A stretch of 64,000 nucleotides of DNA from Amoeboaphelidium protococcarum X5 (Eukaryota; Fungi; Aphelidiomycota): positions 2,124,216-2,188,215 of the forward strand of contig JALDTO010000266.1 in NCBI GenBank assembly GCA_023515725.1, written 5' to 3'. Position 1 is the first letter of the stretch. The number at the start of each line of letters is the position of its first letter. Shown one piece after another: positions 25,280 to 57,124 of this stretch. Below the pieces are notes generated by a model, which searched no databases, had not been told where the DNA came from, and saw only the letters and a program-made list of their open reading frames with translations. The position numbers were made by a program, and so were the translations under genes.

Positions 25280-27118
25280 TCAGATAAGCCCTTTACTGTA
25301 AGGAGTTCCGGTCATGAACCAAACATCGTCAACGCGCCATTCGTGACCAGCTTTATCATAATAATGTCCTTTTTGACCATGTTTAATGCCGCCTTTGCAA
25401 TCATCAGGAGTCTCGACGTAATCAACCACATCAACAGTGTCCACTTCATTCAGAGGTTGCAATGCCTTGACATTGTCTCCACTTATGAAGCCTAAATCAT
25501 GACCATAAAGTTACAGACACGCCTTAAGTTTAGGTAAGGACACCATTACAGACTTGTCTTTAGGATTCGCAGATTTTTCAATACACAAGGGTTAAGCATC
25601 AGCTTCAATAGCTAGCTTATGCAGAGCTTCAAAACCATTCACCGCTTTATAGGACACGTTGGTAAAAGGACTCAATGTTCTATTACCAAACACTTCTTCG
25701 ATATCAATTTAGCCATTTCCATTCATATCAGGCATTGCTAGCATTACATCACCACCATCAGCTCCGGCATGTAGTTCAGTTACATTGCTTGGATCCAACC
25801 AGATACCTGTGCCAAACTTGACTTGAACGCGCCAATCATAGTTGACATCAAACACCAGAGGGGATGCACAACAACTACCAGCAGAATCTGGACTATAATC
25901 ACCCATGTCCGGAGGAGGGGCAGGAGCAGAAGGAGGAGGCGGTGGAGGAGGCATCACAGGACTAGGAGGCTATCGAGGAGTATCTCTAGAAGGTGGACGT
26001 CTGTCTGGAGGTGGACTCCTGTCGGTAGGTGGGCGACGAGATGGAGGAGCATCCGGTTCAGCAGGCGGTTAAGGAGGACGCTCACGAGGTGGTGGAGGAG
26101 GTGGAGGTTAATTTGGCGGTGGTGGAGGATTAATAGGGGGAGATGGAGGAGTATCTCTAGAAGGTGGACGTCTGTCTGTAGGGGGACGACGAGATGTAGG
26201 AGCATCCGGTTCAGCAGGTGGTTAAGGAGGACGCTCACGAGTTGGTGGAGGAGGTGGAGGTTAATTTGGCGGTGGCGGAGGATTATTAGGAGGAGATGGA
26301 GGAGTATCTCTAGAAGGCGGACGCCTGTCTGTAGGGGGACGACGAGATGTAGGAGCATCCGGTTCAGCAGGTGGTTAAGGAGGACGCTCACGAATTGGTG
26401 GAGGAGGTGGAGGCACATTAGGAGGTGGTGGAGTAGGTTCATCAGGAGTTGGTGGTGGAGGTTGCGGCTATCTTGGATTCCAGAAAGCAGGCGTACTAAC
26501 TGTTAATGATGTAGTTACACTTGGCGAGGATGTCACAATAGTACCAGTGGACACTGCAGTTGTAGTAGAAACCTTATAAGATGACTGATACTTAGTAGAG
26601 GTAGATACAGTTGTATTCGTATATGTAGATGGGGTGCTAAACCAAGACTAAATCACCATAGAAGATGGCGTCTCACCAGTTACTAAAGTAATCTTAGTGG
26701 TAGTAGTCAACATTTCTGTTGTATCAACTTAAGACGACGTACCAACACTACAAAAAGAGGAACTCGAAGAGACCTTAGTCTGAGTGGCAGGAATATCCAA
26801 TGAAGTATTTTGATCAAGAGTTCTAGTGAATTGGCACGTTGCGCAAGGCGTGCTTTTAACAACAACCAGAGAAGTGGAGGAAATCGCGTGAGTTGTGACG
26901 CAAGTGGTAGATACAAATGTACGAGTACTAGCAGTAGAGGAGCAGGATGTAGATGTTTGTTGACTTGCTTTAGGGGCACAAGATGCACAGCCATCAGGTC
27001 CACCACTAGCAGTTACATTGTCCCTCAAACGGCACTTGATCGCAAGACCGTCGTTTGGCATCGCACGCGTAAACATCACAGCGGACGTTAAAAGCGAGCA
27101 CAGTTTTAACAGTAGCAT
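25280..27118 (-). CDS. Secreted Ser/Thr- and Pro-rich stalk protein with C-terminal FrpC self-processing-module-like domain (family copy A, 612 aa)
   Basis: Signal peptide, IKCRLR...CASC, S/T-rich region, Pro repeats, then CCASPLVFD...DMNGNGQIDIEEVFG...NGFEAL...QKGHY...DDVWF. Confidence 0.85.
25981..26410. repeat. Intragenic tandem repeat, 153-bp (51-aa Pro-rich) unit, about 2.7 copies
   Basis: TATCTCTAGAAGG recurs at 25981, 26152 and 26305; encodes PPPPPxRERPPQPPAEPDAPTSRRPPTDRRPPSRDTPP. Confidence 0.9.
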
Positions 27119-27262
27119 TATCGCTATTAAGTACAATGACAAACTTGAATGTAGAAAGATAAGCTGTGTGCTTGGTAGAAAATAGAAAAAGAGCAACATA
27201 ACGATCAGTTACAGAAGTAGTTTAGGCAGGTCCAGAACACAAATTCATCCTTGGCATTAGAA

Positions 27263-27300
27263 TGATTGGCTGTTGGGTAAGTCAACGGCGGCTTGACCAA
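27263..27300 (-). promoter_or_regulatory. Conserved upstream element of family copy A (TTGGTCAAGCC..CCCAACAGCCAATC, contains CCAAT)
   Basis: The same bipartite motif lies upstream of copy B at 36953-36987. Confidence 0.55.
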
Positions 27301-27672
27301 CTAAAATCATTATCGACCATTTTGTGTAAAGATAATTCGTGTTGTACTACTTCATCAAAACAAATCAGAGTTACACTACATTATCAAAGGAACACATGCG
27401 GATTCCTTGTATTCTGCTGTAATATAGTAGTGAAAAACTAACCCAAGCTTTAAATAAAAATCCTTACATAATTTAGCTTCAATCACAGAAAATGTGCAAA
27501 GTCTTCAAGGCTCTCTATAGTTGAAGAGTCTTACAACTCAATAAATATATATAAAAAATTCGTTAAACAGAAACGTACTCATTACTCATGCGCTCTTGGC
27601 CTATCAATACGGCCATTCTTTACCACAAAGGACATAGTTTCTCTATCTGCCCGGGCGCGGCCAAACAGTACA

Positions 27673-28020
27673 TAAAAATGCCAGAATCGGGAGCACAAGG
27701 CATCAGCGGTGCAATAACGGGACACAGAGCAGAATCAGGGCCAGAAGGGCCAGCAATGTAGGTATCTTCTTCAGTAGGCGTTAAGCAATCAGCAAAATTA
27801 GAAGCAGAACCAGCGTTGCCTTGTGTAGCCACTGTCGCCCCAGCGGGATGGCTTTTCACTTCATCTACACTCTAAGAGACGGCCCGAGCAAGCTATGAAT
27901 GTATGGTCTCCGCACTTGTCGGGGAGGCTGAGAAGCATATGCAAAGCTACTAGGACCGCACTAATTACAAAAGTTATTTCCCGCGCACCATCCTCAATGA
28001 ATATGATTCCAGACATTTTT
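27673..28020 (-). ncRNA. Candidate structured RNA (a short orphan CDS is not excluded)
   Basis: Nested long-range helices 28005-28020/27674-27688 and 27979-27990/27707-27722, whose mismatches become G-U pairs only on the minus strand; CGCG-rich promoter-like region at about 28050-28155. Confidence 0.35.
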
Positions 28021-28255
28021 CTTCATATTTACTTGTGTACTCTAAGAGATAGAAGTAGAAGAGAGTGGAGTAAACTGAGTCGAATGTCGTTTGGAGTGTT
28101 GAAATGAGGCGCGTTAAATTTCCCTCGAACGGACGCGTCTGAGACCGAGGCGCGCTTCATCAAACATTACCCATGTCGGAAGCGGTAATTACACGCAGCA
28201 GTCACACAGCAAGTATAATATTATGTTAAATGCTCTTTAATAATCTTTCAAATGC

Positions 28256-31000
28256 TCACTTGATAAATCCGTTGGCAATTCTTACAATCACCTTGAGATT
28301 TCTCAAACTCGGATGAACGGGAGACATCTTGGACATGACTTGACACGCACCATCAAGCATTTAGCATACAGATGGCATAATTGCACTAACGTATTCTTTA
28401 ATCAGCGCATCATCTGGATTCAGTGATACTAAAGCTTCTTGGACCCATAGCAATAGCATCTCTACTCCCTGCACATCCTTCAAATTCTACGACACGTAAA
28501 TAGACGCGTACTGCACAAATGATAAAAGGACTGGCTATGAAATCAACGGCTATTCATCCTCAAAGACTTGATCAATATCCAACTTAGTGACCAATTTCAG
28601 CAAAGTATCAAAATTCTTCGACTCCAGAGCTCTTACGAAAGCCGTCTCATAATCTCGTTGCTCAATATCCTGCTTGATCAAATCATCAATGCTCTTGGAC
28701 ATTAGGAGACCACTCATCTAACGTCCATTCTAGCCCATTTGTTGCTACTATTGCTGCTACATCTATTATTACTATTACTCCAACTGCTGCCTGCTCGCAG
28801 TCTTCAATTCATGTACAGCATTACCCAAGTCTAGTACCATCTTCTGCAAGGTGTCAATCTATTACTTTTAGAGCTATTACGTTTACTCCACTCTCTTCAG
28901 CAGTTCATACTCTGTCTTTTACATTTTCTCAGTCTGCTGCTTAACTTGCTTAGTCAGTTCAGCCATTCCATCTGCCACGGCGCGATCTAACTGCTTCATA
29001 ACACCTTACAGAACGGTTTAAAAAGATGGCAATAAAGTGTCTTTGAATTCCACCTTGAAAATATCTTTCAACTGATTCTGTACGATTTAGCTCAATTCCG
29101 CGCTGATAGCCTCTTAATCAATAGATAGTGCAGCTTTCACCGGAGATCCCTGGCTTAATTGTTTCTAGATATCCCTGCCAATCTGCTCTTTGAACGTCTC
29201 CATCTCCTTTTTGATTAGCTATACTACAGACTGATCAGCATTTATAGATGATGCTACAGGTCCGTTACTAGCAGGAGTAGGAGTATTCTCTTTGAACAGG
29301 CCGAGCTACTTCATGATGGAATTCCCAGGAGCCATGGAAGTCGGTGAGGATCTGTTCATATTTTATTAGTTGATAGCGTACTACTTTTCAATATCAGCAA
29401 CCGATAAGATACCAGGAGCCTTAGAAGCAGATGATTAGCGTGAGCCGGTATTGTCTTACGCAGCGGATTGTACTTTAAATTACTTCTACTAAATATTGGC
29501 CGCTTTGGTGGACTAGCCATACTAAAACTGTGGACTAGATACTCCCTGCACTGCATACTGATGTTCTATCAAACGCACACTCTTACCGGATAAAATAGAT
29601 ACGACCAACCCGACACCTTCTGAACTATACGTGTACAAGTCAATAACATCAGACTCGCCGAAAGTTTAACAATCCAAAGACAATTGAGACTGATCTCTGT
29701 CCCACAGGAAGATCAGATACTTATTATGCGCACTAAACGACACTGCCAACGTGGCGCATTTCTGATCAAAAGACAGCTTTATAAACTCATTACCACCCAT
29801 ACCATCAAACTTAAATCTCTGCACCCATTTAAAGTCAACTTTATTAGCATTTGCACTATTAGACTCCAAATTAAAGACTGACATAGTACTATCCTTATTG
29901 GAAGAAGTCACAAACGAGGATGGAGACAGCCAAGCAAAAGAGTCCACATGAGCATTAAGATCAATCAATTTGAAGCTCTTCAAATCATCCACTTGGAACC
30001 GCAACAGGCGATGACTCTGATGCTGATTCAAAATAGCCATACTAAACTGACCACTAGCATCACACTCACTTACCACCATATGGTCAATGCTGATAAACTT
30101 CAACTTGAACACGTCGCTCACCTCATCCAAGCTAACAAGCTACTTTTTAGGATTATTGTACAGGGCCTTCAAAGAGTTGGTATCCACAATGTACAGCTAT
30201 TCACTGGTCAATATCAGCAGAAGGCGCTGGTAAGGAGACAACAGTCTTGCGCAGATAATATTCTCGTTACACCTCAACTTGACCAATAACTAACACATAT
30301 CCTTCACCTAATCCTCACCGTCTACCGGCTAAACTCTGTACAGCGACAACTATCCACGACTATCCGTCGCCACCAGCATTCTATCGTACAGACAAAAGTC
30401 CACCACTGTGCTCTAGTCTCCACCCACGCGCCAAAATAGTCCATCGCTGAGATGGATAACGCGTACACCACCCTTACTCTCATACGCGATAAAATCCTTG
30501 TTATGAGACACCAGCTGCTTATTGGAGAACTTTACTGAATGCTTCAGCATGGTAATGGTCTCTTGATTCTAGGGCTGGTATGATTTCACCGCAGCGTTGT
30601 CATCCAAATCTATAGCGACACTCTAAACACCAGCATTCACATCAGATGACTGCGGATTAAATTCCAATGGCAAATTATCCGTAGACTATTGCTAGGAAGA
30701 CTAAATCAGCTCTTGCAGTGTCCGACCTGTGAAAGACATGTCTCCAACTCTTTCGCTGGCATTGATTCTATCCGAGCTCGATAAACCATCGCCACTCATA
30801 GTAGTTGAGCCATCATAACGTGCACCAGTAGAACTAGCATTATCAACGTTCGAATCGCCATAGTCACCATCGTCATCGCCTTGGGACATTTGATCCTGAG
30901 GTGTCTGCGCAACCAAACTCTACCCAGAATCTTTACGGGATGAACTGCCCAACAGAATATCCAATAAACTCACACTAGACGGCTTCTTTTTCTCAGACAT
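28256..31000 (-). CDS. EDC4: Enhancer of mRNA decapping 4 (EDC4/Ge-1/Varicose)
   Basis: N-terminal WD40 region, coiled coil, C-terminus ISQPVLLSFVQ...WVQEALVSLNPDD. Confidence 0.8.
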
Positions 31001-31285
31001 GAAAATGGAAATTAAATATTGTCAGTACGACTTTATAATGAACCAACCTCAACGAGCGTCAATAAGGTAAAGACTTTCGGTAGGAGAAGAATTGGAGAAG
31101 AACGAACGACGCGCGCCGTTCACGACTGATAGGGACGATTTTAAATTACTCGCTCATTCCATCTGTTACAGTACAGTCGTCACGGTTGAGAGAGTGCAAA
31201 GGGGCGGATTCTTCAAATTTGATTGATTGATTACCTCTATCGTTTATGTCATTACCGTGAAAAATACAATTAAATTTTGTTGAGA

Positions 31286-32683
<1,398 letters not shown>

Positions 32684-33205
32684 AATTTGTGAATTCATAA
32701 TTCAATATAGTGACAGAATATTATTCTTACTTATTCTTTGTTATGATTCAGCATACTGAATAGTCAACTATAACGCGCTTGCCTGAATCCATTAATCACT
32801 GCACTTTACTCTTTCAAGGGACTTGATATTTAGCGAAACTGATACTCTCACTTAATTAGTATTATCTTTGCGGCAAGATGTCATGTAATTTGCTGAATAA
32901 CTCGGCAACTGTAAGCTATATAAACCGCCACATCATCTCTTTCTTTCAGCGTTTATTGTTTCAGCTTTGTCATTTCGATCGTTTCTCTTTCTTTCTTATA
33001 ACTCTTACCGTATAACGCGACTTTGAGTTCAATAGGATTTTATTTCTCATATAGGTTGCAAGATATTTGTGATTATATAATTCTCTTATCATATCCCTTT
33101 TGAAATTATAGTATCTGATAATATTGTTTCAATAAGAGTTGAAGGATTATGAAGACTCCGTACAAGTTGTATGTGAGTGGCTCCTCTCCACAATCTATTA
33201 ATGCA

Positions 33206-35032
33206 ATGTCAGAGTTCACAGCCGACTACAGTATGGAGGAGATGTATTGTGAGACAGACTTGGATTTTGAGTGTGATGCTCCTAAATGGTTTGACTTTCG
33301 TACTATGCCCAAGTAGCCTGAGAATGTGGACTAGTGGTTTGATAACAAGATGGATACTCCGCTGAGTTAGAGATTGAATGAGCCAGAGTGTCTGTACGTT
33401 CCCGGTGAAGACTCTGCTGTTCTTGGTGGATCTGCGTATGGTGATGGTGGTCATGATTTTGATAGCTTTTCTACTCCTAGCAAGATGCCATCTATCCCTG
33501 AGCCAGGCAATAATAATAATAATAATAATAATGAGAACGGTGTGCATTCTGCCTCTTAGTCAAGTGACTCTCGGCCGTCATTCGCCTCCGAGACCAAGTC
33601 GTTTGCATCTTCACGCAGCTTCAGTCTGGAAGAGTTGCGAGAGTCTCTTGAGCTGGATAATAATAATAATAATAACATTAATGATAATGAGTCTTAGAAT
33701 TCCTTTAGATTTGATGAGGATGAGACTCCTACCAAGAATAAGATACAGTTATTAAGGCTTCAGTAGCAGTCTCTTTTGAAGAATAAGCCATTCAGTCCAG
33801 TAAAGCCATCTCGATTGTTCAAGAGTGCAACTGCGGAAGATTTTCTGTCTTCTGAAGAGTCTTAGAAGGTGTTGGTAGAATCTAAGCAAGTGGAATCTTA
33901 GACTATTCAATTGTCTAAAAAGTATCCCTCAATGAAGACCAAGAGCTCTCTTCTAAATTCTTAAAAAGAGAATGATTCTGGTGGATTCAATGTGGAAAAA
34001 TAAAGAAACTCTCTTATGCATAAGAGTGGTAGATAGGATAATAACATTACTTCTGTCCAGCCAGTTGTCGCTAAGAAGAAAGTGGTCACATTTATGGCCA
34101 CAAAGTCGGTGAAGCCTCTCACTGTGCCTGTTGAATTCAATTTTTCAAAGAGAGATGTTCCTAGGTAGAAGTCTGCTGTCCCATAGCAATCATAAAGTTA
34201 ATTCAAGTAAAAAGATACTGTGGGTACTGCGCAATAGAAACCGCAGGTACAAAAGTCTGCACCCAAGTTGACAAAGCCTAAGCCGTTCAAATTCCATTCA
34301 GTAACTCGAGCTGCTCACAAAGTGACGTAAGAAAAGTAGTCTCCCTACGTCCCTCTGGCAGAGTGCGTTAAAAAGTTTGAAGCCACTCCCGCTAGATTCA
34401 AGTCACATGTGAATGGGAACATTAAAGGGAAGGTTCAAGATGTATCAAGAAAATCTATTGCGCCTAAAAGATAGTATACTCATTTGCGAATTACTCATCC
34501 CAAGTCACCAAAGTTTTTGACTGATAAGCGTCTCATGGAAAAGAAAGTTGTGTAGTAGTAGTTTTAATAAAAGAAAGAAGAGTAAGGCAATGTCTCTCAA
34601 CTGGTAAAGCCAAAAGTCAAAAAATTTAAATCAGCTGCACCTCTTAAGAAGGTAAATTCAAATGTTAACGGACTCGCCGGTGTGCCTCGAGTCAAGAAAT
34701 AGGCTCTTACTATTCCAAAGTCGCCTAATATTACCAAGCCGTCCAAGTTGAGACAAGTAGTTCAATAACCATAGCAGTTATAAACGAAAGATACATCAGC
34801 GGGATAGAGTGAGAAGACTGCTGCGTCTTTGAAAGTTCAAGTGCCTCATAAGACTGCTTCTTCTGTGTCTCGTACCTTCGCCGCTAAAGAAATTAAGCCT
34901 GCTCCGAAGATTAATGTTTAGCCGTTGAAAAAGGATAACAATAATGGTGCGAATATGCAGAAGAAGCCTCCGAGAATGTCCTTCTTTGAGAGACTGGCCC
35001 AGCCGAAGCATCGCGTTGAAGTAAAGCACTGA
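33206..35032 (+). CDS. TPX2: TPX2-like spindle assembly factor
   Basis: N-terminal DFECDAPKWFDF (Aurora-A-binding-like); TPX2-type repeats LTVPVEFNF, LTKPKPFKF, ITHPKSPKF, LTIPKSP; SPYVPLAECVKKF. Confidence 0.72.
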
Positions 35033-35158
35033 CTGTCTGATATGTATTTCGACACAATACTAAAAGATTGATAACTGTAAATAACATAACATAATTGTAA
35101 AATCACGTAATCTTATGGATACGGCAAATCTATTGGCGACTCTGCTTACACTTTAACT

Positions 35159-36609
35159 TCATCTTTTATTATTTTGATACTGCCCAGCATAATGTTGTTA
35201 TTGATAATAAGGATCCTGATATTATGATTGATACTATGGATCATAACTACCGCCAAAATTTCCATCATACTACGCGTAGTACGGCTAATTAGGAGGTGGG
35301 TAGTCGCCACCAAATTATCCATATGGATCATACTGATACTGATCGTAGCCACCATAAAACTACTATTAATATCCCTACGACTGCGCGGAAGGATCCAACT
35401 AATAATATTAGTCATACTGGTTATAATCATACTGCGGCTGAGCATCATAATAATTGTAAGTTTAACCATACGTATCTGGAGCAGCCTAGAAGGACGAAGT
35501 ATCAGATGCCGGCATAAAATCACTTGCAGCACCACTAAATTTGAACTCTGCAGCATTTGGATTGAACGAGAGCTATTTGCTCAGCTTTTCTGGTGAGCTT
35601 GGCTTTTCTTCAGCGTATTACTACTTTGCAGCCTCTGGTGCCTTTTCAGAGAGCTCTTACTGTGGCTTGACTTTACTTTCAGATGTGGCAATAGACTGCT
35701 CAGTTTTTTAAGCCTTGCCATCAGTCTTTCCACCAATCTGTGGTGATTACTACTTAGATCTCAAAGATGGTGGTACATATTTCCCCTCACCGCGACTTTT
35801 AATACTACTACTACTGCTAACGTGAGAGGGAGATGGTTTATCTCTAACTACGGCGCCATATAAATCCTCTTCATCTATATCACCGCTAAGTTTATGACCA
35901 CGCTCCTCTGCCAAATGAATATTACTAGTTTGTCCACGCTCAATTTCCCTGGCGATTCTTGCAGCTTCACGCTCCCGCTTCTTATACTCTGCAGAATTCT
36001 TATCTAATGTAGTGGTGTATAATTCTTCTTTGAAATCAGTCTTTACTCCAAATAGTTTCTCATTAGCTGCGAATTAATCCCACCTGCCTCTAGACTTTTC
36101 ATTGCTATTACTGCTATTAGGTGTTTGTGGAAGAGGCGACGAATTATCTGGCGCCCATGCGACTAATTCTCTCTGCTTGCCATCCTATTAATTTTATACT
36201 TCACCTCTATTATTACTGCTATTACCACCAGATATACCCGTGTCAGTTTTGAATCCTTGACGATCATTTAATATTCCGCCACTAGCAAAAGTGAGATCGA
36301 TATCCGTGGCATGCATCATCTAAAACTTCTGCAAACTAATCTTTATCTCCGACTTGACATCTTCCAAAGACACTCTTTATTATTATTATTTGTATGACTG
36401 ATGCACGCACTTTAAAGTAATTCCACTAGAATCCAAATGACTAAATACACCTTCATACTGCACTCCATCCACAGTTTTCACCATAACATGAGTTCCAACG
36501 AAATTCGTAAGCAACAACTGCAATCTTTGACTTCTACATTAAATTGAATGAAATAATAATCTTAAATATAGCAACAAGTACTTAAACTTTAACCTTACAA
36601 CGATCCCAT
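35159..36609 (-). CDS. PBP1: Ataxin-2/Pbp1 (LSm + LsmAD; intron 36534-36598)
   Basis: [60 protein letters not shown]. Confidence 0.92.
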
Positions 36610-36920
36610 AATTAATAGCTGAATTCACACGTAAAAAGGTTGACTATATTTGCCTAAACTTTAAGCTAAGCAAGCATGAAAGGAAAGGGAGAAAATAGAG
36701 GAGCGGAAGAAAACGAGAGGAAAATTCTCATTCAGTACTATAGTTTTCACTCAGACAGTCAGTCACAGTACAGTGGCTTCAATGGAGAATAGGAGAGGAA
36801 AGACTGACGCGTGAATTGAAACGCCTCCAATTGATCAACTCAAGGAGATATGTTTCATATTGTTGATTTTCAGCCTCCCATGCTCGCAAAGAATGAATCT
36901 CCACTGTGGATAATGTTGAA

Positions 36921-36987
36921 TGATTGGTCAAGCCGCTGAAAGGGTTGACATAATTGGTCAAGCCTTAGATTATCCCAACAGCCAATC
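36921..36987 (+). promoter_or_regulatory. Conserved upstream element of family copy B (TTGGTCAAGCC twice, CCCAACAGCCAATC)
   Basis: Shared with the upstream region of copy A. Confidence 0.55.
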
Positions 36988-37093
36988 GTTGAATACCATG
37001 TAATTAGCATTTTTCGGTCACATAAACTACTTTAGGTCACTTCAATCACACAATACATTGTCCTTTTTCAACTCAGATATCGTCTACTTAAAA

Positions 37094-38710
37094 ATGTAAT
37101 ACCTAGTGTTGAAATTGTGCTCACTTTTAACGACTGTTGTGATCTTCACGCGTTCGATACCAAGCGAAGATCTGCCGATCAAATGCCGGTTGAGAGACAA
37201 TACGCCTGCTGGTGGAGGACCTGATAGTTGTGCGTCCTGTACAAAGTAAGTCGTTGTAAGTGAATCGCCGTCTATACCCTGCTCTTCTAATGCTATTACT
37301 CTGGCATCTTCATCTACTGCATCCTCCACAGTCTAGGTGATTTCTTCTACGCCGAGCACAACTACTCTGGCTGTTGTGGAAAGCATTACTTGCACATCGT
37401 CGCAATTAATCAATACCTCTAGCTAAGATAAGACGTCTGCTATTCCAACTACTTAATCCAAGTTCACCTTATATACCTCCTCTCAAATCACTAGTTCATA
37501 GTCTAAGGTTGTTACAACCGAATACGGTTCAAAGTCTACACTGTCTACTATTTATACCTCTACTACCGATTAGATACCCTCGTTAACTAAAACTTCCTCT
37601 AGCTTATTAAGTACTTCTGCTCACGAAAGTATTTTTGCTTCAACCTCTACTACTATAGCAGTGTCCACTACCACTGCAGTATCTACCCCTAGTACAAAGA
37701 CTCGTCGTAAAATCCGTACATAACGTGTAAAGTCGTCTTAGTACTCTTCTGCTGCTTCATCTAGTACATTGTCCAAGACCAAGACTCGTCCAACTGCACC
37801 AACCACGGTGCGTACGACAACTTATTAGTCTATTCCTACCTTTAAGCCACTCGAGTCTTCCACAAAGGTCTCCAAGACCAAGACCAAGTCTACCACTTCC
37901 AAGAAAATGTCTACTTCTGTTCAGCCTCCTAAAACTACCACGAGACAGCCTGTGATTACACCTACTTCCTAGAGGCCGTAAAACCCAATAACTGTACCTA
38001 CACCTCCGCATCCTGCTAAACTGCCTGCGCCATTCTCATAGAAACCCTTAGTTCCCGCACCGCCTCCTCCACCTGCACCTGTAGCTGAAGAGCCACCTAT
38101 GGACAATGGCAGTAGCTGCTGCGCATCCCCTCTAGTGTTTGATGTCAACTACGATTGGCGTGTACAAGTCAAATTTGGCACCGGTATCTGGTTGGATCCT
38201 AGTAATGTGACTGAACTACATGCCGGAGCTGATGGTGGTGATGTAATGCTAGCAATGCCTGATATCAATGGAAATGGCTAAATTGATATCGAAGAAGTGT
38301 TTGGTAATAGAACATTGAGTCCTTTTACGAATGTGTCATATAAGGCAGCTAATGGTTTTGAAGCTCTACACAAGCTAGCTATTGAAGCTGATGCTTAACC
38401 CTTGTGTATTGAAACATCTGCTAATCCTAAAGACAAGTCTGTATTGGTGTCCCTACCCAAACTTAAAGCTTGTCTGTAAATGTACGGCCATGATCTGGGA
38501 TTCATTAGTGGAGATAATGTGAAGGTATTGCAACCTCTGAATCAAGTGGATACCGTTGATGTAGTTGACTACGTTGAGACTCCGGATGATTGTAAAAGTG
38601 GTATGAAGCATGCACAGAAGGGTCATTATTATGACAAATCAGGTCATGAATGGCGCGTCGATGATGTTTGGTTCATGACTGGAACTCCTTACAGTAAAGG
38701 TCTTATTTGA
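37094..38710 (+). CDS. Secreted Ser/Thr-rich stalk protein with C-terminal SPM-like domain (family copy B, 538 aa)
   Basis: Signal peptide MQYLVLKLCSLLTTVVIF, IKCRLRDN..GGPDSCASC, S/T stalk, same C-terminal domain as copy A. Confidence 0.85.
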
Positions 38711-38898
38711 GTGTTCTTTCTTTAGTGATATGTTAGTCACCAAAGGCCTTTATAAGCATGACTTTTTAATATATTATAGTATATCTGTATAAAGTTGTTA
38801 TTTGCAGGTTTAATCACGTTTACTTTGGATGTATCAACGCGGATATATCTTGTACTCAGTCAGCGTCGTTATGAATACTAAAATAGCATTGGGATTTC

Positions 38899-39450
38899 AT
38901 GTTGACCTCATTAAAAAGACAGAAAAAGATATTCCTATCGCTTGTTATAGTAATGATGAACTTTTAATCTAAAGGAAGACATTGCTGCTGCAGCCATCGC
39001 TGTTCACACTCGTGGAGTTTAGCAGAAAAGTCCGAGTTGAAACAACAGAAGAATACAGTCAGGTCCACGATCAAACCGATTTCATAATAATCATCTGGTC
39101 ATAGATTATCTGATTATAATCCAGGCATTTACCAGAACATTAGTATTAACAATTCATAATTTAAAGCAGATGCTATAAAGTAGTAACAGCCGTTTATGGA
39201 TGGTGATGCAATGACGTTGGAAGGCAAGAGTAACAGTCAATCTGAGGCGTCTCGAGAAGTGCCATTATCGTTTAATCAGGACTATGGATGGAGAAGATAT
39301 AGAGAGCATCGCGTTCACTGGGATGATATAATGGTTGACAGAAAGATTATCAACATGTATATATAATAAGATCATCAGGTTGGAAGTGCATTGAAGAGAG
39401 TGCGCCAGCATGTCGACTCGATGAAGTCAAAGTACAGTTCAAATATATGA
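38899..39450 (+). CDS. Hypothetical protein (183 aa)
   Basis: Open ATG..TGA frame with TAR=Gln; no recognised motif. Confidence 0.4.
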
Positions 39451-39476
39451 TAGACTAAGTTTGTTATACAGTGATC

Positions 39477-43204: not shown

Positions 43205-43351
43205 TTTGAGTGTTTTTGTCGAGTTTTTGTGTTGATCAAATAAAAGCCAAGAGAAGAAGGAGAAAATGCAGCAAAGATCAAATGAAGTGCTTCAAGAGAC
43301 TGCCACCTAGTACATGTACGATCTATTAAAATAATAAGATATGAAAGGGCA

Positions 43352-44503
43352 TCATTCATTAGTACTAAGTATCACAGTTCTCAAGATGTAGATATTTGAT
43401 AGAAAGAAGGCAATACTTGATGCGAACAATTCAATAAACGTGTTCTCGCCTTTAATCTCCAAGCGGTAGGCAAAGTACAACCACACGGCTTGCGACAATA
43501 CCCAATATGTTGTGCATTAGAGTAGTTACTTCATGGACATCCGCACACGCTACTAAATTAAAGGGATAAAGACCAGGAACCAGATAAAATACTGAGACGT
43601 TATAACCTTGTTGAAAGATACAAATACAAAGGTGCACAGGATGACGGCCATTATAAGATCTCGTGCAGCGTATCGCAACGAAATGGCCAGCAGTAGAGCA
43701 ACTTGTGGTAAAAACGTGAGGATTGAAGAGTATCTGATAGCCGATAAGTTATCAGCCGCTGTGACCTGCATGTACATCAAAGTGTTATAAATGGCAAAAT
43801 TATGACGATGGTCTCTTCTCCCAATATGATACAGATAGGCATTGTGTAAGAAGTCCATTCCATACCGTTAATAAAACACCGCGGTCAGTCCGCCTAATGA
43901 GAGTAGAGAAGCCACGCCAAACTTTAGAATTCTAGGGATACTTGCAGAGAGCGTATTAGATCGAGAGCAAATAAAAAAAGCGATAGAAGGTGCGTAAATC
44001 AATGGGTAAATCTTCCAATGAATTGAGACTCCGTATATCATTCCAGCCAATAACAACTTCTAGTTCTATAACAGGTATATGGTTATAATGACCAGTAAAA
44101 CAATAATACACTCAGCATTACCGCGAGTAGATATAGCGATTACAAATGGGTTCAGCCACCACCACCATACGACCGCATTAGACTATGTGCCCAACCGTGC
44201 CAGTAGCAATTCCATAAAGCAGCCACATATGATATCACCAGAGACGAATAATAATTTACCAAATGACTAGTCTATTATGTGGTTCCCTATCATCATCAGA
44301 GCCAGGAGCGGCGTATATCGGTAAGTGGATCTCTCATAAGGACTCTACCCTTCAAGCATGAATCGGGCAGCATCAGTAAAAACTTCATAGTCAATGTCCG
44401 TGTATCTAATCCCCCATAGTTCCAATCCAGACACAGCCACCAACAATACTCTGACCAAAATAGCAACTATTACCAGCCATCGCTTCATCCCGAGGAGAGT
44501 CAT
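43352..44503 (-). CDS. GPI14: GPI mannosyltransferase I (PIG-M)
   Basis: [53 protein letters not shown]. Confidence 0.94.
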
Positions 44504-44744
44504 AGAATATACAAAGCAGTCAATAGCAGATGATGAGACTTAACTTATCCTTCGACCGTATGAAAGTTGATATAATACACTGAAACCTTCAGCGAAATTT
44601 TAAAATGCGTCGCTCTATTTGAGATCTTTTAGTTTGACCGCGTGATCATTTCACCACAGTGCTGTAATATTTTTGCTCTTCTATAAAGACTCATTTTCTT
44701 AGTGCTCACTAAAATTTTAAAACCAGTCTGTATTAAAATTCAAT

Positions 44745-45668
44745 ATGGCGTAATAACTCAAATCTTCAGTCATTATTCCGTCGATGCATGCAATTAGTCG
44801 AGTAAAGATTCCATTGCATACCAATAGTGTACCTGCCGTGTAACCACTTAAGTGGACGCGTGTGGAGGAGCGCACAGGACTGCTGGCCATCAAGAAGGGC
44901 ATGATGAGCGTGTGGGATCAGCAGGGCAGACGCGTACCAGCCACTGTTTTGTAATTGGATTAGACTATCGTTCTGGGACACAAGACTGAGCGTCGCGATG
45001 GTTATGACGCGTTAGTTGTCGGTTGCCGATCAGTAGATGTGGATACCATGGAGAAGTTGGACAAGTATTAGTCACACGTTGCCGTATCGCGTCAGGCTGC
45101 TATTGGATATTGCGTCAAGCATTTTAGTGAATTCAAAGTATCTCCCAATGGATTTATCCCGGTCGGCACTCTTTTGAACGCGGCTCACTTTGTACCGGGT
45201 CAATTTGTTGATGTGCAGGCGAGATCGAAAGATAAAGGTTTCCAGGGAGTAGTGAAGAGGTGGGGATTTCATGGTCAATCCGCGTCACATGGTGTATCTA
45301 AAGCTCATCGCTCCGGTGGTTCGATTGGTATGAGAAAGACACCTGGTAAAGTGTTCAAAGGTAAGAAGATGCCTGGGCACATGGGTGATGAGAACGTTAC
45401 GGTACACAGCTTGCAGGTTCTTCGCGTCGATCGACTGTTGAATCTGCTCTATATCAAGGGCAGTATTCCGGGTGATAATGAGAGCTGCGTTAAAGTGTGG
45501 GATTCTCTATTTAAAAGTGAGGAACAGTTTGATCCTTACCTGAATCCACCTCCATTCCCAACTATAAGTCCTCAATCTCTAGAACTGATGCCTGCTGAGC
45601 TGAGTATACAGTCTGGAGATGATGCCGAATAGTCCTTTTCCTCAAAGTACTTATATAAAATAGACTGA
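44745..45668 (+). CDS. MRPL3: Mitochondrial ribosomal protein uL3m (start uncertain)
   Basis: RTGLLAIKKGM, KGFQGVVKRWGF, SHGVSKAHRSGGSIG, GKKMPGHMG. Confidence 0.92.
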
Positions 45669-45778
45669 TTTTTATTGCATTCAGCGTGTAAATATTTTCA
45701 TTATATAAGCCATTTTATAATAAAGACAGTTTTGAGGCAAGCTTGCTAAAATTACAGTATTACAATACTGCAAGTCTC

Positions 45779-48289
<2,511 letters not shown>

Positions 48290-49343
48290 TTAATATTGAT
48301 ACTTGATAATAGGGACCAATTATGAGTCAGTCTGTTAATAGTGAAGATAAGCTAAGAGGAAAGAATTGGAAAATGCAGAGCGACGTCAAAGAAGAATTCT
48401 GTGCTGATCACGCGTTTGTCATCGTCGTCATCGTTATGCCTTAAACGGCGAAAGATTTTGGGAATATCAAAAATTGATTGAAGTGGATACTTCGAACATT
48501 ATTATTATGCGAACAGTCAGCAGTACGGCGGTAAAGACAATGACGCGATTAATCTTGCCCAAAACTTTTGTGAGATATTAGGGCGTGAACAATTAACCAC
48601 CGCTGATAAAATAGAGTAAATTGAAAAGTTTGTACCATCTTATGCGATTGGATAAGCCTATTGGTACCAATTTGTTATACATTCCTTGCACATGGTATTT
48701 ATTGTCTTTGTTACTCTTGTTAATACATTCTATGATAACTCTCGTTCTGTAGGTCGATTCTAATGGCTTAGTACTATTAGAAAACTTAAGCGATGATTAA
48801 TGTTTAGTCAGGGACGATTGATTAAAGCTAGCAATTGTTTGATGTATTGTCTTAATCATCAGAGTCGTTCAAGATGTTGGCACTGTTTGGAGTTGGTGCT
48901 GTGGTAATGCGCGGTGCTGGTTGCACTATTAACGATATGTGGGATAGAGATTTTGACTCCAAAGTATGATTAATTGTATCGTTTGCTTGTGTAAATACGA
49001 ACTGATTTGATATCATCATTAATGTAGGTTGAAAGGACGCGCAATCGGCCCATTGCCTCAAAGCAGATATCAATGAAGGAAGCATGGGGATTTCTAGCTC
49101 TTCAAATGACTGCTGGTCTGGGCGTTTTGACTTAGCTCAATATGAATAGTATTATCCTCGGCGCATCGTCTCTACCTCTTGTCGGACTCTATCCGTTGGC
49201 TAAACGCGTTACAAAGTATCCGCAGTTTGTTCTGGGTCTCACATTTAATTGGGGCGCCCTGCTCGGCTGGTGTGCTATGACTGACACCGTGGACATTTCA
49301 GTTTGTCTGCCTCTTTATGGTGCTGGAATATGCTGGACGCTCA

Positions 49344-49473
49344 TGTTGAGCTGAAACCGTGTTGACGCGTTTCAGTCACTCACTCTCTCTCTTTATCATA
49401 TAAGAGTTGAAACAACTGTTAATATACTTGTTATATCTCATATTCACTTCACTCTCTTATACTATTCTTAACA
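49344..49473 (+). repeat. 5' LTR
   Basis: Identical to 54191-54320. Confidence 0.97.
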
Positions 49474-49477
49474 GATT

Positions 49478-52400
49478 ATGAGACCGAATGCTCCACCAAT
49501 GAATACTGGTGTATTAATTTAGAATCCAAAGTTAAGCTAACTACTAGGTGCTGATAATGTAGCCTACTCAACTTGGTCTATGGACATGCAAATGACAATG
49601 AAGAAGAATTCATGTTGGACTGCTATAGTTCCTTAGCCTCCTTCTGCTACATCCTCCAGTACTACTTCCGCCTCTCAACCAGATGGTTCTACCGCTAATA
49701 TCGTTTATGTTAATGCTACTGGTCCAAGTGATTACGTCGTTGACTGCAAAGCTTAGAGCATCATATTTGAGAATGTCACCGATGCTGTCAAGGTATATTT
49801 ACGCTCCAAGATGGCCGAACAGTAGTCTCAAGAGTTGACAGCTAAGTAAATGTGGGACTTGTTGAAGGATCGCTACTCCACTGGCTCTCTGGTCAATCGC
49901 TTGGCTGGTCTTCGTAATTTGCTTGTGTGTACTCAAGACAAGAACGAAAAGCTATCTGAGTATGTGAACAAACTCTAGGCTGCTAGTCATCATGCTAGAG
50001 TGGCAGTTGACAATGATGGCAAAGTCTGCTTCAAAGAACTGCAACTGGCAGTCTCCCTGTTTGGCATTGACGCCAAATTCGATCACATCCGCCTAAACGC
50101 TGAGCAGCAACTTTCCGTGTCAACTCAGACTTCCACTCTGACGTTTGATTCTCTGATGTCCATAATGTTGAATGAGCAGGAGCGTAAAGATGCAAAGGAC
50201 ATCGAGTAAAGAGGGCCTTCTATCCAAGTAACAAATGCTGGTGATATTCAACAGGTCAACTTGGTAAAGAAGGAGTATCCTGTGTGTGATTACCCTGGTT
50301 GCCCGAAGCCTCGTGGACACAGAAAGGAACGATGTGATAAGAGAATTCAGGATTTGGAAGCAGATGTTAAGAAGTATAAACCATCTGCCACGGCTAACTT
50401 GTTGTAAACCAATCCGTAGGTAGTCTCTGATTGTGACAGCTCTTTTGACGCAATCTTCATGGCCTCTGATCGTACAGTTAGCGGTAGTGAATGGTTTCTA
50501 GACTCTGGCGCGTCTACTCATTGCTGCAACGACAAGGATGCTTTTATAGAATTGTCTGCCTGTTCAGGCATGAAGGTACAGAACTATGGAGGCAGTGATA
50601 AAGAGTTGGTGTGTGCCGGAGTTGGTACCGTCATCCTCAATGCAGTTGTTGATGGTGAGCGTCGCTGTCTAAAGCTGGAGAATGTTATGCACTTCCCGGG
50701 TGCTAGCTGCTCCTTAATGTCAGTGTCAAAGCTGAAAAGCTCTGGCAAGGTGACGTTGGTTGACCTTGACAGCCAGTTTGTAATCCAGTCAAAGGCAAAC
50801 AACAAGAAGTTGTGTGTGGCTGTCCTAGAGAAAGGTCTTTATCGCATTGTAATTGAGTAGCCATAGAAGGTGCTGAATGTGGTCAATCTCATTAGCCAAC
50901 ATGCCTAGCCGCCGCAGTCTGTAATGGTCAACTATCAAACGCTGCACCGTCGTCTCGGCCACCCCTCTGAAAAGTTGGTGAATAAGTTATGACAACAACA
51001 GTATGTGAATGTGAATTTGAGTGAGTAAAAGACTTTTGAATTCTGTGATGATTGTCTTTCTACGAAGCTGCAACGTGCTCCTTTTCAGCCTTCAGATTCT
51101 ATCTACTCAAACCCGCTTGATCTCGTGGTGTCTGATCTTAGTCCATGCAATATCCGCTCGTTTCATGGGTTCAAATACGTAATGACACTGATGGACATGG
51201 CCACAAGGAAATTATGGTCGTACATGCTTAAGAATAAGTCTGAAGCATTTGGGCACTTCAAGCGGTGGTTGACGTTGGTAGAGAATGAATCTAGTTTCAA
51301 ATTGAAGAAGTTTCGATCTGATGGGGGTGGAGAATACATCAATGGTGAATTCCGTACTTTTCTGGCTGACAGAGGTGTGGCCATTCAAAGCACAACTGCA
51401 CATACTCCTCAGCAAAATGGCAACAGTGAAAGAGTCAACTAGACGCTGTGGTCCATGGCCCGTACGTTCTTGAAAGTGTTTGACACTCCTCACACTCTTT
51501 GGCCAGATGCCATCATGGCAGCATGCTACGTTAAGAACCGTTTGCCTCATTCAGCTGTGAATTTTAAGCTTCCAGAAGAGTTGTGGACTGGAAAAAGGGC
51601 AAGCCTGTTTCACTTGCGGACGATGTTCTGTCTTGCGTATGTCAGACACTCCAAGTCAACTTTTAAGAAATTGGACGATAGAAGTTTTCCCGCTGTCTTT
51701 GCTGGTTACTCGTTAGAAAAGAAAGCTTGGAGATTCTATAGTTTAGATCTAAATAAAATTATCTTCAGCCGTGACGTAGTATTCTTAGAGAACAAGGCGC
51801 CAATGATTTAGCCAAGTTTTGTCTACAAAAGGGAGTAGTTTGAATTGATGGATGAATCTGATTAGTCCGCTGTGAGAGTATCTGCATAGGACATTTACAA
51901 CTCTGCAGGACTTGGTGCAGCTGTAGATCCAACCATTGAGGAGTTAGTCGAGTAACCGCAGATTTCATTTGATGCCGCAGCTGCTACCCGTCCAACTACA
52001 GCATCCATAAACGTCGAACCAAATGCTGAACCGGCTGAAGTCACTGAAGTCCCCAAAGAGACTGTAGACGATGAATTTGTTGACGCTGCGGAGGATACCT
52101 AGCCAATGGATAATGCCATTACTCATCAAGATGAAGATATTTCTGACAAGACTGCCAAAGCTCTCCTGAAGCTATAAAAACAGTTGTAAATTGACATGAA
52201 TGATACTAAAGTAATGAAAGTTGATGTGCAAGACTCCAAAATTGAGGTAGGTAACATGCATCTGAGGGTGAATGATCCGAAAATAGAGGTGGATGACATT
52301 GTAGGGATTGCTCGTAGCATTACCCAATCAAGGAGACACCAGTTGTCTACTCCCACAATTAATTTTGTATCTGCCAACCCGTTTTAAGCACTGGATGATT

Positions 52401-54178
52401 GTTATGAATAAGATTAGCTATCCACTGATATGGATGATAGCGAGCAGTTCCATGATGCTGTGGAGAACTTGGAGTAAGAGTATTGGTATCATATTGTGGA
52501 TCCCTACACCAATAAAGTGTATCAAACGTGTGCATTCGCTTATCAAGAATTGAATCGAGTGTTTGAAGATCCGCAGTCTTACGATGCTGCATTGAAATTG
52601 CCAGATGGTCCATAGTGGGATGAAGGTACTCAAGAAGAATTCTCTGCTCATGTAGAGAATGGCACATTCATCTTGATTGACGAAGATTAAGTTCCAAAGG
52701 GTGAATAAATACTCACATCCAAGCTAGTCTTCAAATATAAGACTGATGCAACAGGTCATCTGGACAGAAGGAAAGTGCGCTGGTGCATTAGAGGATTCTT
52801 GTAAGAGATGGATTGGGCTGAGATTTTTGCTCCAGTGATAAAGTATGCAACTATAAGGATTCTTCTAGTATTGGCGTCACTGTTCAAATGGTAACTTACG
52901 TAGTTCGATGTCAAAACTGCCTTCTTAAATGCGTTCCTAAAGAGACCGGTTTACACTAGGCCTCCAAAGGGGTTCAAGATTCCAAAAGGCAAGATTATGA
53001 AACTCCTCAAATCCGTTTACGGTCTAAAAGAAGCGCCCAAACTGTGGAATGATTTATTGACCAAGTCATTGAAGTCGATAGGTTTCAATTGTATTAATTC
53101 TGACATCAGTCTTTATATGTTTAAGCTTAATGGTCAGACGTTTCTTCTCGCTGTCTACGTTGATGACATGGTATTGGCTGGTCCGTCCGGTGATTTATAT
53201 AATAAGATTTGCGATGACATAATGAAACTGTTCAAGGTTAGAAATCTTGGGTGGCCTGCTTATTTTCTTGGAGCATAGATCAAGACTAACTCTGATTCTT
53301 CATTCACTCTGAATCAAGAAAAGTACATCAGGTCCATTGTAGAGAGATTTGATATGCGGAATGAGCATCATGTTAAGACACCGTGTGCAACTTACAAATT
53401 GGATCTTTCCATGTGTCCTTAAGATGAGAATCAGCGCCAAGAAATGGAATAGATCCCTTATCAGCAAGCTGTTGGCTGTCTAATGCATCTTGTTCAGTGT
53501 TGCCGCCCTGACATTGCTTATGCGGTGTCTCAAGTTGCGCGATTTATGAAGAACCCAGGCATGAAACACTGGTTAGCTGTAAAAAGAATTTATGGGTATC
53601 TCTAAAGCACTGCGCATATGGGAATTGAAATCGATTGTACTAAGGCTGGCTTGACTGGCTTCTCCGATTCTGATCACTGTGGTAACTTAGACCACTCAAA
53701 ATCAACGTCTGGATATGTATTTTACTTGTGTGGTGTCCCAGTATCTTGGAAGTCAAGTCTGCAACCTATTGTAGCTCTGAGCTCAGTCGAGGCAGAGTAC
53801 ATCGCACTGGCAGCAGCTGTCAAAGAAGGTATCTGGATCAAGTAGTTGTTATATGAGCTGCAACTGCAAGATGTTGCGCCTCAACTTTACTCTGTCCCTA
53901 GACTCTTTGCAGACAATCAAGGATCTATTTACTTGACTAAAGCATCTCAACAACATCATAGAACTCGACACATTCGTTTGCGCTATCACTTTCTGCGACA
54001 AGAAATCCAAGACCGTACGTTGGACATAGAATTTGTCCGGAGTAATGCAAATGTGGCTGATGTGTTTACAAAAGGTCTTGGAAAGAATCTGCATTGGCTG
54101 TTTGTAAGCAAGATGGGAATGAAAGTACGAGAGTCATATAAGCCTCTAGAAGTTGAGGTGACCAAAAAGGTGGTATGA
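49478..54178 (+). CDS. Copia gag-pol polyprotein (PR-IN-RT-RH order) with one in-frame TGA at 50990-50992
   Basis: WFLDSGAS (protease), HRRLGH..CDDC, RSDGGGEY, PQQNGNSER (integrase), QFDVKTAFLN, YVDD (RT), FSDSD, VADVFTK (RNase H). Confidence 0.93.
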
Positions 54179-54190
54179 TTTGCGGTCGGC

Positions 54191-54320
54191 TGTTGAGCTG
54201 AAACCGTGTTGACGCGTTTCAGTCACTCACTCTCTCTCTTTATCATATAAGAGTTGAAACAACTGTTAATATACTTGTTATATCTCATATTCACTTCACT
54301 CTCTTATACTATTCTTAACA
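54191..54320 (+). repeat. 3' LTR
   Basis: Identical to 49344-49473. Confidence 0.97.
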
Positions 54321-54783
54321 GCTCATGTATGATACAATTTACGCACATTAAGATAAGCACGATGATGTTAAAGTTGGGATTAAATCTACCGCCTTGACAT
54401 TTGCACATCGTACTAAAACTATCTGCACAGCTCTCAATATCATGCAAACTGCACTATTTCTCTGTGCAGGAATAAATAATGATTAAAGTTTTGGATACTT
54501 TAGTTCATTAATGCTAAGCTCTATTTATATGTAATCTCTTATACGGCGCGTAAATTTGAATAATGTCAATTCTTGTAACAAGGCATTTAGAAAGAGTTAG
54601 TACGCGGGATGGTTGATTTCTTTAGGTGTTGTAGTTGACATACTTATCAAGGCGGCCGTATTAACGTGAATAATACTTTCGTGATGATGAAATTAAAAGC
54701 TTTAAGTTTATCAATTTTATAATCTATTCATTCAATATTAGTCAACCCTTTTAAATTGTTTGAAGTGTCCAGCTTCATAGAGA

Positions 54784-55392
54784 TCACAAATTTCTGATGA
54801 TCACAGAAATAGCGACGGACATGAATGCATTAATCAGGGCAAATGATCCAAAGATGGAGTCTGCGTCATTAGTAATGAATGTGGTTGGAGGAGGTCTGTT
54901 GCTGCTGCTAGGCAGTGGAGGCAGATTGTCCTCAGTCTTGGTAGAGTTGCTGTTATTACGATTGTCAGACTTTGATGATGGAGGATTCTTCTTCTCTTCC
55001 TCCTTTGCCTTGGCATCATCCTCGGCCTACTGCAGCAGCTATGGATTATCCTTGACGTAGTTACAGCTGTTAGTTGCAGAATCAGTCAGCGCCAGTCTCT
55101 GTCCCTGCAGAGCCAAGTCTTGAGGACACAGAGAGTAACACTGAAGAGCCTTTTGCTGTCCTTCACACAAGCACTGGTAGTACTTGATATCTGGCACTCC
55201 AGACAGGTCAGCACTACATCCAGCCATAGCATTGTTGGCGTCCATGTTACACTGATTGAACTGAACAATCTTGTCACAGATAGCAGGCAATTGACCATTC
55301 ACCACAGCCATATCATACGCGCTTTGACCAGACGCGAAACCGATCATAGCAGCCAGAGAAGCAATAACGACGTTTAGCTTGTTTGCAACCAT
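54784..55392 (-). CDS. Secreted Cys-rich, probably GPI-anchored protein (202 aa)
   Basis: Signal peptide, 8-Cys domain (QCLC, CYSLCP), S/N/P linker, hydrophobic C-terminus. Confidence 0.8.
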
Positions 55393-55669
55393 ACTTGATA
55401 TTTAATATTAGAATACTTTGAATTTTAAGTCTTAATAAGAAAAAGAAAGTTATCAGATATAAATCCGCTCTTTAAGTGATCGGTATATCTCGATTTAGTA
55501 TCATGCTTCCCAAAATAGTATCTTGAAGTCTTGGATGGAAACTTCGAAAATTTAAAATAGGATCAACTGATTACAATTCTATATTTAGAATTGTTAAATG
55601 ATTAATCAATATACATTAAAAAGATGACCGAAAGAGTAAAGATATATTACAATAACATTAGGTAAATAA

Positions 55670-57124
55670 TCAAATTAGACCTTAACTGTAAGGAGTTCCG
55701 GTCATGAACCAAACATCGTCAACGCGCCATTCGTGACCAGCTTTATCATAATAATGTCCTTTTTGACCATGTTTAATGCCGCCTTTGCAATCATCAGGAG
55801 TCTCGACGTAATCAACCACATCAACAGTGTCCACTTCATTCAGAGGTTGCAATACCTTGACATTGTCTCCACTTATGAAGCCTAAATCATGACCATAAAG
55901 TTACAGACACGCCTTAAGTTTAGGTAAGGACACCATTACAGACTTGTCTTTAGGATTCGCAGATTTTTCAATACACAAGGGTTAAGCATCAGCTTCAATA
56001 GCTAGCTTATGCAGAGCTTCAAAACCATTCACCGCTTTATAGGACACGTTGGTAAAAGGACTCAATGTTCTATTACCAAACACTTCTTCGATATCAATTT
56101 AGCCATTTCCATTCATATTAGGCATTGCTAGCATTACATCACCACCATCAGCTCCGGCATGTAGTTCAGTTACATTGCTTGGATCCAACCAGATACCTGT
56201 GCCAAACTTGACTTGAACGCGCCAATCGTAGTTGACATCAAACACCAGAGGGGATGCGCAGCAGCTACTGCCATTGTCCATAGGTGGCTCTTCAGCTATA
56301 GGTGGAGGAGGCTGAGGTTCATTACGAACGTTGGGTCGCTTTGAGATGTTAGGCGGAAGTGGATACGGCGCAGGTACTTTAGTAGGAGACTGAGGCTGAG
56401 GTGTCGGAGCAGGTGCTTTAGTAGGAGACTGAGGCTGAGGTGCCGACGCAGGAGACTATGGTTCAGGAGGCGGCGGAGATGGAGGTTACTTTGGAGATGG
56501 CATCGGATGAGGACTGGGAGCAGGATGAGAAGGCGGTTTTGTTGGTGGCTCTTTCGGTGGTGGAGGAGGATTTTTAGGCTTGTGAGGTGGGTTATGAGGA
56601 GGCTTATGAGGAGTCGGTGGTGGAGGTGTAGGAGGAGATGGAGGTGGCATAGGAGGCTCATACGGTGACGGAGGCACGGTAGTCGTAATCTGCGGAGTGT
56701 TTGAAGAAACACGACTAGTAATCAGAGATGAAGGAGGCACCGAAGAGGTTGAATAAGGAGTTTCCACAGACTGAGAAGAGGTTGGCATATAAGCCGACGG
56801 CTCAGGAGTTTTGGTCTGAACTGAACTAGTTTATCCACTAGTGGAGCATGGGGTAGCAGAGAATTCGTTTTCGTGAACCGCGTCACAACTGTCACCACCG
56901 CAGTTTGTATAAGATCCTTAAGGCATCCCATACTGCTTAGACGCAATCTGACCAGGAGAGCTACTAGAATTACTGTTGCTTTAGCCATACTGATTTTGAT
57001 TTGATTCTCTCAACCGACACTTTATAACAGTAGCACCCTATGATTCCATCTCCGGCAGAGCATAAGCAGACGTGGCAACCAAAAGCACTAAACCCAAAGA
57101 TGTAGTATTACCACTAAAATGCAT
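55670..57124 (-). CDS. Secreted Pro-rich (extensin-like) stalk protein with C-terminal SPM-like domain (family copy C, 484 aa)
   Basis: Signal peptide, IKCRLR, PPPP/HKPP/APQPQSPTK repeats, same C-terminal domain. Confidence 0.85.

Follow-up and report, generated by a model that had tools for sequence, protein, structure and literature searches.

The window analysed here, a 64,000-nucleotide stretch of contig JALDTO010000266.1 of the aphelid Amoeboaphelidium protococcarum X5 (assembly GCA_023515725.1, positions 2,124,216 to 2,188,215 of the forward strand), contains three genes, hereafter copies A, B and C, for putative secreted proteins that end in a domain related to the self-processing module (SPM) that occurs in the Neisseria protein FrpC. 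Coordinates below count from the first letter of the window.

Three stalked proteins and their C-terminal domain

The window consists of AT-rich, gene-dense eukaryotic DNA in which long open reading frames are absent under the standard code and numerous once TAA and TAG (TAR) are read as glutamine. Copies A to C are open only under this alternative code, each containing 11-17 in-frame TAR codons and using TGA as its stop. Read in this way, the three frames given in a preliminary description of this DNA are recovered as genes for proteins of 612 amino acids (aa) (copy A, 25280..27118, minus strand), 538 aa (copy B, 37094..38710, plus strand) and 484 aa (copy C, 55670..57124, minus strand). They had been called intronless, a term whose sole basis is the single open frame in each copy.

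All three proteins show the proposed succession of a hydrophobic N-terminus, a KCRLR motif, a stalk rich in serine, threonine or proline and a C-terminal SPM-fold domain, with the N-terminus representing a putative signal peptide as judged, here and throughout the family, from hydropathy alone. The motif comprises residues 28-32 in copy A (27023..27037, minus), 30-34 in copy B (37181..37195, plus) and 35-39 in copy C (57008..57022, minus). The stalk is Ser/Thr-rich and then Pro-rich in copy A, Ser/Thr/Lys-rich with a short Pro segment in copy B, and an extensin-like Pro/His/Lys sequence in copy C. No hydrophobic C-terminal anchor is present in copies A to C, nor was a glycosylphosphatidylinositol or membrane anchor seen. 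The C-terminal domain extends over 194 aa from the Ser of an SPLVFD motif to the stop (25280..25864 in copy A, minus; 38126..38710 in copy B, plus; 55670..56254 in copy C, minus) and is 94-98.5% identical in protein sequence among the three copies. Its first residue is Ser419 in copy A (codon TCC, 25862-25864, minus), Ser345 in copy B (38126-38128) and Ser291 in copy C (56252-56254).

Two proteins served as stand-ins for the window copies in comparisons with known proteins, namely the paralogue L011, whose domain is free of TAR codons, and P0008, an NCBI entry with a domain 94-95% identical to those of the window. L011 aligned end to end with the FrpC SPM structure 6SJW (residues 5-180, E 1.7e-8). 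An AlphaFold model of P0008 (predicted local distance difference test score 91.7) matched only the two FrpC SPM structures, 6SJW and 6SJX, in Foldseek (E 2e-7, template modelling (TM) score 0.58-0.66, probability 1.0), and a VIA comparison with the PDB returned the FrpC SPM at Z 13.9, with a root mean square deviation of 3.7 over 150 residues and the runner-up at Z 3.0. Moreover, the Pfam 38 family PF26745 (SPM) is found as a precomputed annotation on aphelid paralogues, and the matches in the ESM Atlas are all SPMs. The window domain belongs to the SPM family (PF26745) by sequence and by fold, so that a likeness first seen by eye is upheld at both levels. Given the precomputed annotation, the homology had already been caught automatically. 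Our literature searches found no papers that mention it, and the Aphelidium zoospore paper carries no relevant annotation. In a Pfam release predating PF26745, stop-free pieces of the window domain gave no match and the full domains only sub-threshold EF-hand similarity, and an NCBIfam search of the domain produced zero matches over the cut-off. For the P0008 model, none of the Hint, SEA and GAIN folds rose above background in Foldseek or VIA; homology to Hint or SEA was rejected.

A large family and the probable bacterial origin of its domain

The three genes belong to a family of at least 27 copies in the A. protococcarum genome, identified by sequence search and spread over several contigs. 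A hydrophobic N-terminus and a stalk are found in all of them and the KCR motif in 22, and the NCBI entries for the paralogues are hypothetical proteins of this species. Copies are paired across matching contigs (for instance C264 and C214), in line with a duplicated genome, which we take this species to have. With 53 positions invariant across the 27 paralogues and a ratio of nonsynonymous to synonymous substitution rates (dN/dS) of 0.03-0.2, the SPM-fold domain is under strong purifying selection. Part of its near-invariance in the family, stressed in the preliminary description, is owed to another process. Copies A and C are 98.5% identical in domain DNA, yet their heads share 31% of residues, whereas copy A and its partner on contig C214 share 98% of the head at 88.8% identity of domain DNA. 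The identity between A and C falls off at both domain edges (25280-25880 and 55670-56270), and their near-identity is the result of gene conversion, with a tract spanning just the domain. The length and the high identity of the domain stand as described, but the extreme similarity of A and C reflects conversion. A Cys-Cys pair before the Ser, to which the same description gave mechanistic weight, is present in the window copies but specific to their clade, being found in six of the 27 genomic copies; with 21 paralogues lacking it, we rejected it as a component of the mechanism. The KCRLR motif is an aphelid surface-protein motif of wider use, as it also occurs (as IKCRLR, followed by a Thr/Pro stalk) in a gene without SPM (L124:1287-2402, minus; G000:C13), downstream of a secreted pAdhesive_15 (ice-binding-like adhesive) domain. 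Within the window, two consecutive long open reading frames at 49355-54178 (plus), gag-like and then integrase-like, resemble by eye a Ty1/copia-type retrotransposon just upstream of copy C.

Outside the genome, an exhaustive search yielded about 100 close relatives with roughly 35-51% identity, in which the domain is again C-terminal. With this subfamily as query, 185,579 prokaryote genomes were scanned and 65 loci recovered. In most cases their titles read Gastranaerophilales, Melainabacteria, Vampirovibrionales, Caenarcanum or unclassified Cyanobacteria, and a minority bear the unverified labels Muribaculaceae, Gammaproteobacteria and Desulfobacteraceae; the best structural match in the Atlas is likewise a Melainabacteria cluster (TM 0.85). 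The C-terminal SPMs of Melainabacteria/Vampirovibrionia (e.g. MFA6990089.1) are 40-51% identical to the aphelid domain and share its remodelled core (GDKMLAM, EVFG, DVWF). They differ from the aphelid proteins in lacking signal peptide, KCR head and Ser/Thr/Pro stalk, and in mixing a majority of Ser-Pro with about one quarter of Asp-Pro sites; the subfamily is uncharacterised. Individual Melainabacteria encode up to several stand-alone proteins of 400-900 aa that end in such an SPM (L049-L113). No conserved secretion genes were recognised beside these SPM genes, whose recurring neighbours appear housekeeping-like. Elsewhere in bacteria, SPMs also occur together with lipase/Tle-like phospholipase or DUF6973 domains (ESM Atlas rows), which suggests that the module may be used more widely for cargo release.

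In a phylogeny computed without the column preceding the conserved Pro and without FrpC, and with bootstrap values that had not fully settled, the aphelid copies and a set of environmental eukaryotic sequences form one clade (support 100/98) on a single long branch. This clade is united with the Melainabacteria subfamily against other bacterial SPMs (100/99), and it lies either within the subfamily (82/65) or beside it (sister alternative, approximately unbiased (AU) test p = 0.42). The environmental relatives reside on further eukaryotic contigs, use mostly the standard code and share the layout of the aphelid proteins (L046, L047, L048, L123, L154). L046 adjoins IFT122, and L047 a gene for an RNA polymerase subunit, with Paraphelidium as best named match (68%; fungi at most 63%). 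Their existence is most simply read as one old transfer that predates the split of these lineages, and no named eukaryotes outside aphelids appeared among the matches whose names could be looked up. Three of these genes have peculiarities of their own. L046 (612-2633) repeats a KCRP motif four times after the signal peptide. L154 (3361-4863) contains a Cys-rich segment before its Ser-Pro and, within the stalk, a single in-frame stop of the TAR type (a code variant, an intron or an error). L048 (1978-3690) combines a signal peptide, a KCRVR motif and a Thr-rich stalk with a canonical Asp-Pro SPM and is, judging from its sequence, the strongest eukaryotic candidate for genuine clip-and-link chemistry.

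The horizontal acquisition and the fusion to mucin/extensin-like stalks proposed earlier are both borne out, and the nearest kin of the domain can now be narrowed to Melainabacteria/Vampirovibrionia. It is strongly supported that the domain entered the aphelids once, from the Melainabacteria-subfamily lineage or its ancestor, and was then fused to a signal peptide, a KCRxR head and a Ser/Thr/Pro stalk. We consider it very unlikely that the gene instead moved from a eukaryote to a bacterium, or that aphelids and Melainabacteria both received it from a shared unsampled donor. The limited support for nesting, the AU result and the patchiness of the subfamily (three strong matches in 201 sampled genomes of the class) leave some room for such scenarios, but every outgroup SPM is bacterial, the bacterial members have neither signal peptides nor stalks, some of them carrying RTX-like repeats, and the eukaryotic copies share one long, well-supported branch. 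Contamination or a decaying relic, which an intronless gene with a bacterial-type domain might bring to mind, can be practically discounted and was rejected, because the genes require the TAR = Gln code of the host and have eukaryotic genes as neighbours, are present 27 times over several contigs with dN/dS well under 1, and are related to genes found on further eukaryotic contigs.

The active site and the residue before the conserved proline

Following the alignment of L011 with 6SJW, from which FrpC numbering is taken, and the residue roles described for FrpC (PMC7078468), the aphelid domain retains Pro415, G477, G491 and D579. By this alignment, two of the four Ca2+ loops of FrpC are kept. 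D419, D421 and D423, together with D456, are present as Asp, Asn, Asp and Asp, with G424 replaced by Trp in the window clade, and the D462-E474 loop persists, although the Asp-to-Asn change noted earlier in the DxNGNG loop of copy C is real and falls on D462. The loops D499-D511 and D521-E532 are remodelled. D478 and D579, ligand positions of the transient fifth Ca2+ in FrpC, are kept in the family, the former as Asn in the window copies. FrpC tolerates this exchange, whereas D579 is required for cleavage, its D579A variant being dead (PMC7078468). The equivalents of Pro415 and D579 are invariant in 27/27 copies, and that of D579 is retained in 136 of 137 homologues of the Ser/Thr/Cys type. 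Neither Trp of the W451/W519 pair is conserved, and the aphelid domain has two additional invariant Cys residues. In bacteria the module cuts its own chain and becomes attached to other proteins. Asp414 itself is replaced by Ser or Cys in the aphelid copies, and the reported loss of this catalytic residue is confirmed by the Ser found in all three window copies. Since a D414A exchange kills both cleavage and linking in FrpC (PMC7846742), the anhydride chemistry cannot run in the aphelid domains. Furthermore, the SPM is internal in FrpC and ApxIVA, which are type I-secreted RTX proteins, whereas it is C-terminal on signal-peptide proteins in aphelids, and no RTX repeats occur in the window proteins. 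From their sequences, the aphelid proteins are thus members of the SPM fold family, yet predicted not to be clip-and-link modules of the FrpC type.

The position before the conserved Pro is occupied by Ser in 21 and by Cys in six of the 27 genomic copies, and never by Asp; the codons used are TCN (10), AGY (11) and TGY (6). Among 214 homologues at the 90% identity level, Ser (159) is followed by Asp (47), Cys (4), Thr (2) and Ala (2). Ser, Asp, Cys and Thr together account for 212 of these sequences, while neighbouring positions accept 19-20 residue types, and both Ala cases are otherwise damaged, with either the Pro or the DDVWF motif at the end missing. Asn is absent from this position (0/214), though it precedes 50 of 353 other prolines (14%) in the same domains, and this speaks against a simple Asx/ST turn. 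When an Asp-type query was used and scoring began at the Pro, the RTX-type bacterial proteins retrieved likewise had mostly Ser. In view of this majority among the bacterial homologues sampled, the Ser state is bacterial and was inherited by the aphelids; it is not the aphelid peculiarity for which it had been taken. A further pattern concerns the residue one step upstream. Gly, Asp or Pro preceding Asp-Pro blocks cleavage of FrpC (PMC7846742), and in agreement with this rule none of them is found there in 38 Asp types. By contrast, Gly precedes 30 of the 137 Ser/Cys/Thr types (Fisher p 4e-4, uncorrected). The patterns before the Pro fit selection for a side-chain nucleophile, as far as sequence comparison can indicate.

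Possible activities and their meaning

Where Ser, Cys or Thr residues break a chain, the established route is an N-to-O/S acyl shift in which they attack the carbonyl before them, as in SEA, GAIN and Hint domains, and Hedgehog-type proteins are secreted proteins whose processing domain stands at the C-terminus. The aphelid domain likewise has a conserved Ser, Cys or Thr at its putative cleavage site; the fold, however, is unrelated to those of Hedgehog/Hint, SEA, GAIN and CwpV, so that the likeness is one of analogy. CwpV offers a precedent in which backbone conformation drives an acyl shift (PMC3256870). We favour a similar course here, at a level slightly short of an even chance, namely a Ca2+-assisted self-cleavage at X|Ser-Pro through an ester intermediate that is hydrolysed or captured. 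The domain would still fold on Ca2+ by means of its two remaining sites and the retained ligands of the transient site that adjoins the scissile bond, and folding would strain the backbone at its first residues. In what is the least certain step, the Ser or Cys before the Pro would then attack the carbonyl of the preceding residue, breaking the chain one bond upstream of the FrpC cut, at X|Ser-Pro (with Ala as X in copies A to C). Hydrolysis of the ester would release the stalk, while capture by an amine or hydroxyl would tether it covalently in the cyst wall, the appressorium glue or the host wall. Such tethering to host or cyst wall appears doubtful to us. During transit through the Ca2+-rich endoplasmic reticulum (ER), the chain may already be cut within the secretory pathway, provided that the absence of two Ca2+ sites does not slow the reaction; a secreted Asp-type SPM is indeed partly pre-cleaved in the ER (PMC12538545), which makes timing a real problem for any role as a covalent glue.

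Several observations weigh against self-cleavage at X|Ser-Pro. No study testing a Ser-Pro SPM turned up in our literature searches, and the strain described in FrpC lies at the (-1)-Pro bond rather than one bond upstream. On independent pairs, which are too few, the excess of Gly falls short of significance, and it would also fit relaxed selection. The Asp/Ser state has switched at least 18 times among the homologues, yet zero columns covary with these switches once phylogeny is allowed for by means of independent pairs, so that a dedicated base is not evident; the homologue sample was, in addition, partly collected with a Ser-type query. The absence of covariation would suit an uncleaved tip, a stable, Ca2+-dependent globular module for adhesion or assembly in which the residue before the Pro caps a turn or helps to bind Ca2+ and only Asp types cleave, which we regard as a tenable but distinctly less than even prospect. 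The inactivity of FrpC D414A (PMC7846742) and the disappearance of two Ca2+ loops and of W451/W519 speak for such a tip, as do the arrangement of a tip on a stalk, a typical adhesin layout, and the use of the KCRLR-plus-stalk unit with an adhesive domain in another gene of this genome. The ER pre-cleavage of a secreted Asp-type SPM (PMC12538545) could even favour inactivity in a eukaryote. However, Asn, a common capping residue, never takes the position while Cys does, Ser likewise predominates in RTX-type proteins of bacteria, for which pre-cleavage in an ER has no bearing, and the eukaryotic L048 pairs a canonical Asp-Pro with the full secreted layout. Alternatively, the chain might break at the FrpC bond itself, with a Ca2+-twisted Ser|Pro amide opened by water or an external amine or hydroxyl and the Ser or Cys merely positioning the bond. 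The twisted-amide machinery is kept (Pro, the D579 equivalent, and D478 as Asp or Asn), and Asp and Ser have interchanged at least 18 times without other changes, but the loss of cleavage in FrpC D414A implies that strain alone is insufficient, and Ser could attack its own carbonyl only through a four-membered ring, making this route improbable.

A wider proposal, that SPMs with Ser-, Cys- or Thr-Pro, which make up most of the family sampled, are active ester or thioester autoprocessors and that the aphelid, Melainabacteria-derived one acts as a covalent glue on algal or cyst walls during infection, is speculative and, in our judgement, unlikely. If the favoured reading of the active site holds, most SPMs, as domains of 20 kDa, would rely on something else than aspartic anhydride chemistry. 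In that case a module able to withstand the secretory pathway would also be of interest for NeissLock-type ligation, in which ER pre-cleavage is a stated problem (PMC12538545).

What is new, on sequence grounds, is a known domain in a new kingdom and a new architecture, with a putative catalytic variant. In their signal peptide, low-complexity Ser/Thr- and Pro-rich stalk and single globular tip, the proteins resemble mucin/extensin-like stalked adhesins, from which they differ in that the globular domain is C-terminal and of bacterial origin. A. protococcarum is an aphelid parasitoid whose spores attach to green algae, encyst and pierce the algal wall by means of an appressorium (PMC3577820). 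The transfer and the expansion of the family stand even if the domain is inert. If our reading is correct, aphelids, the sister group of fungi, have built a large family of surface proteins on a domain from non-photosynthetic relatives of cyanobacteria, and this family would provide concrete candidates for the adhesion of their spores to algae and their encystment on them.

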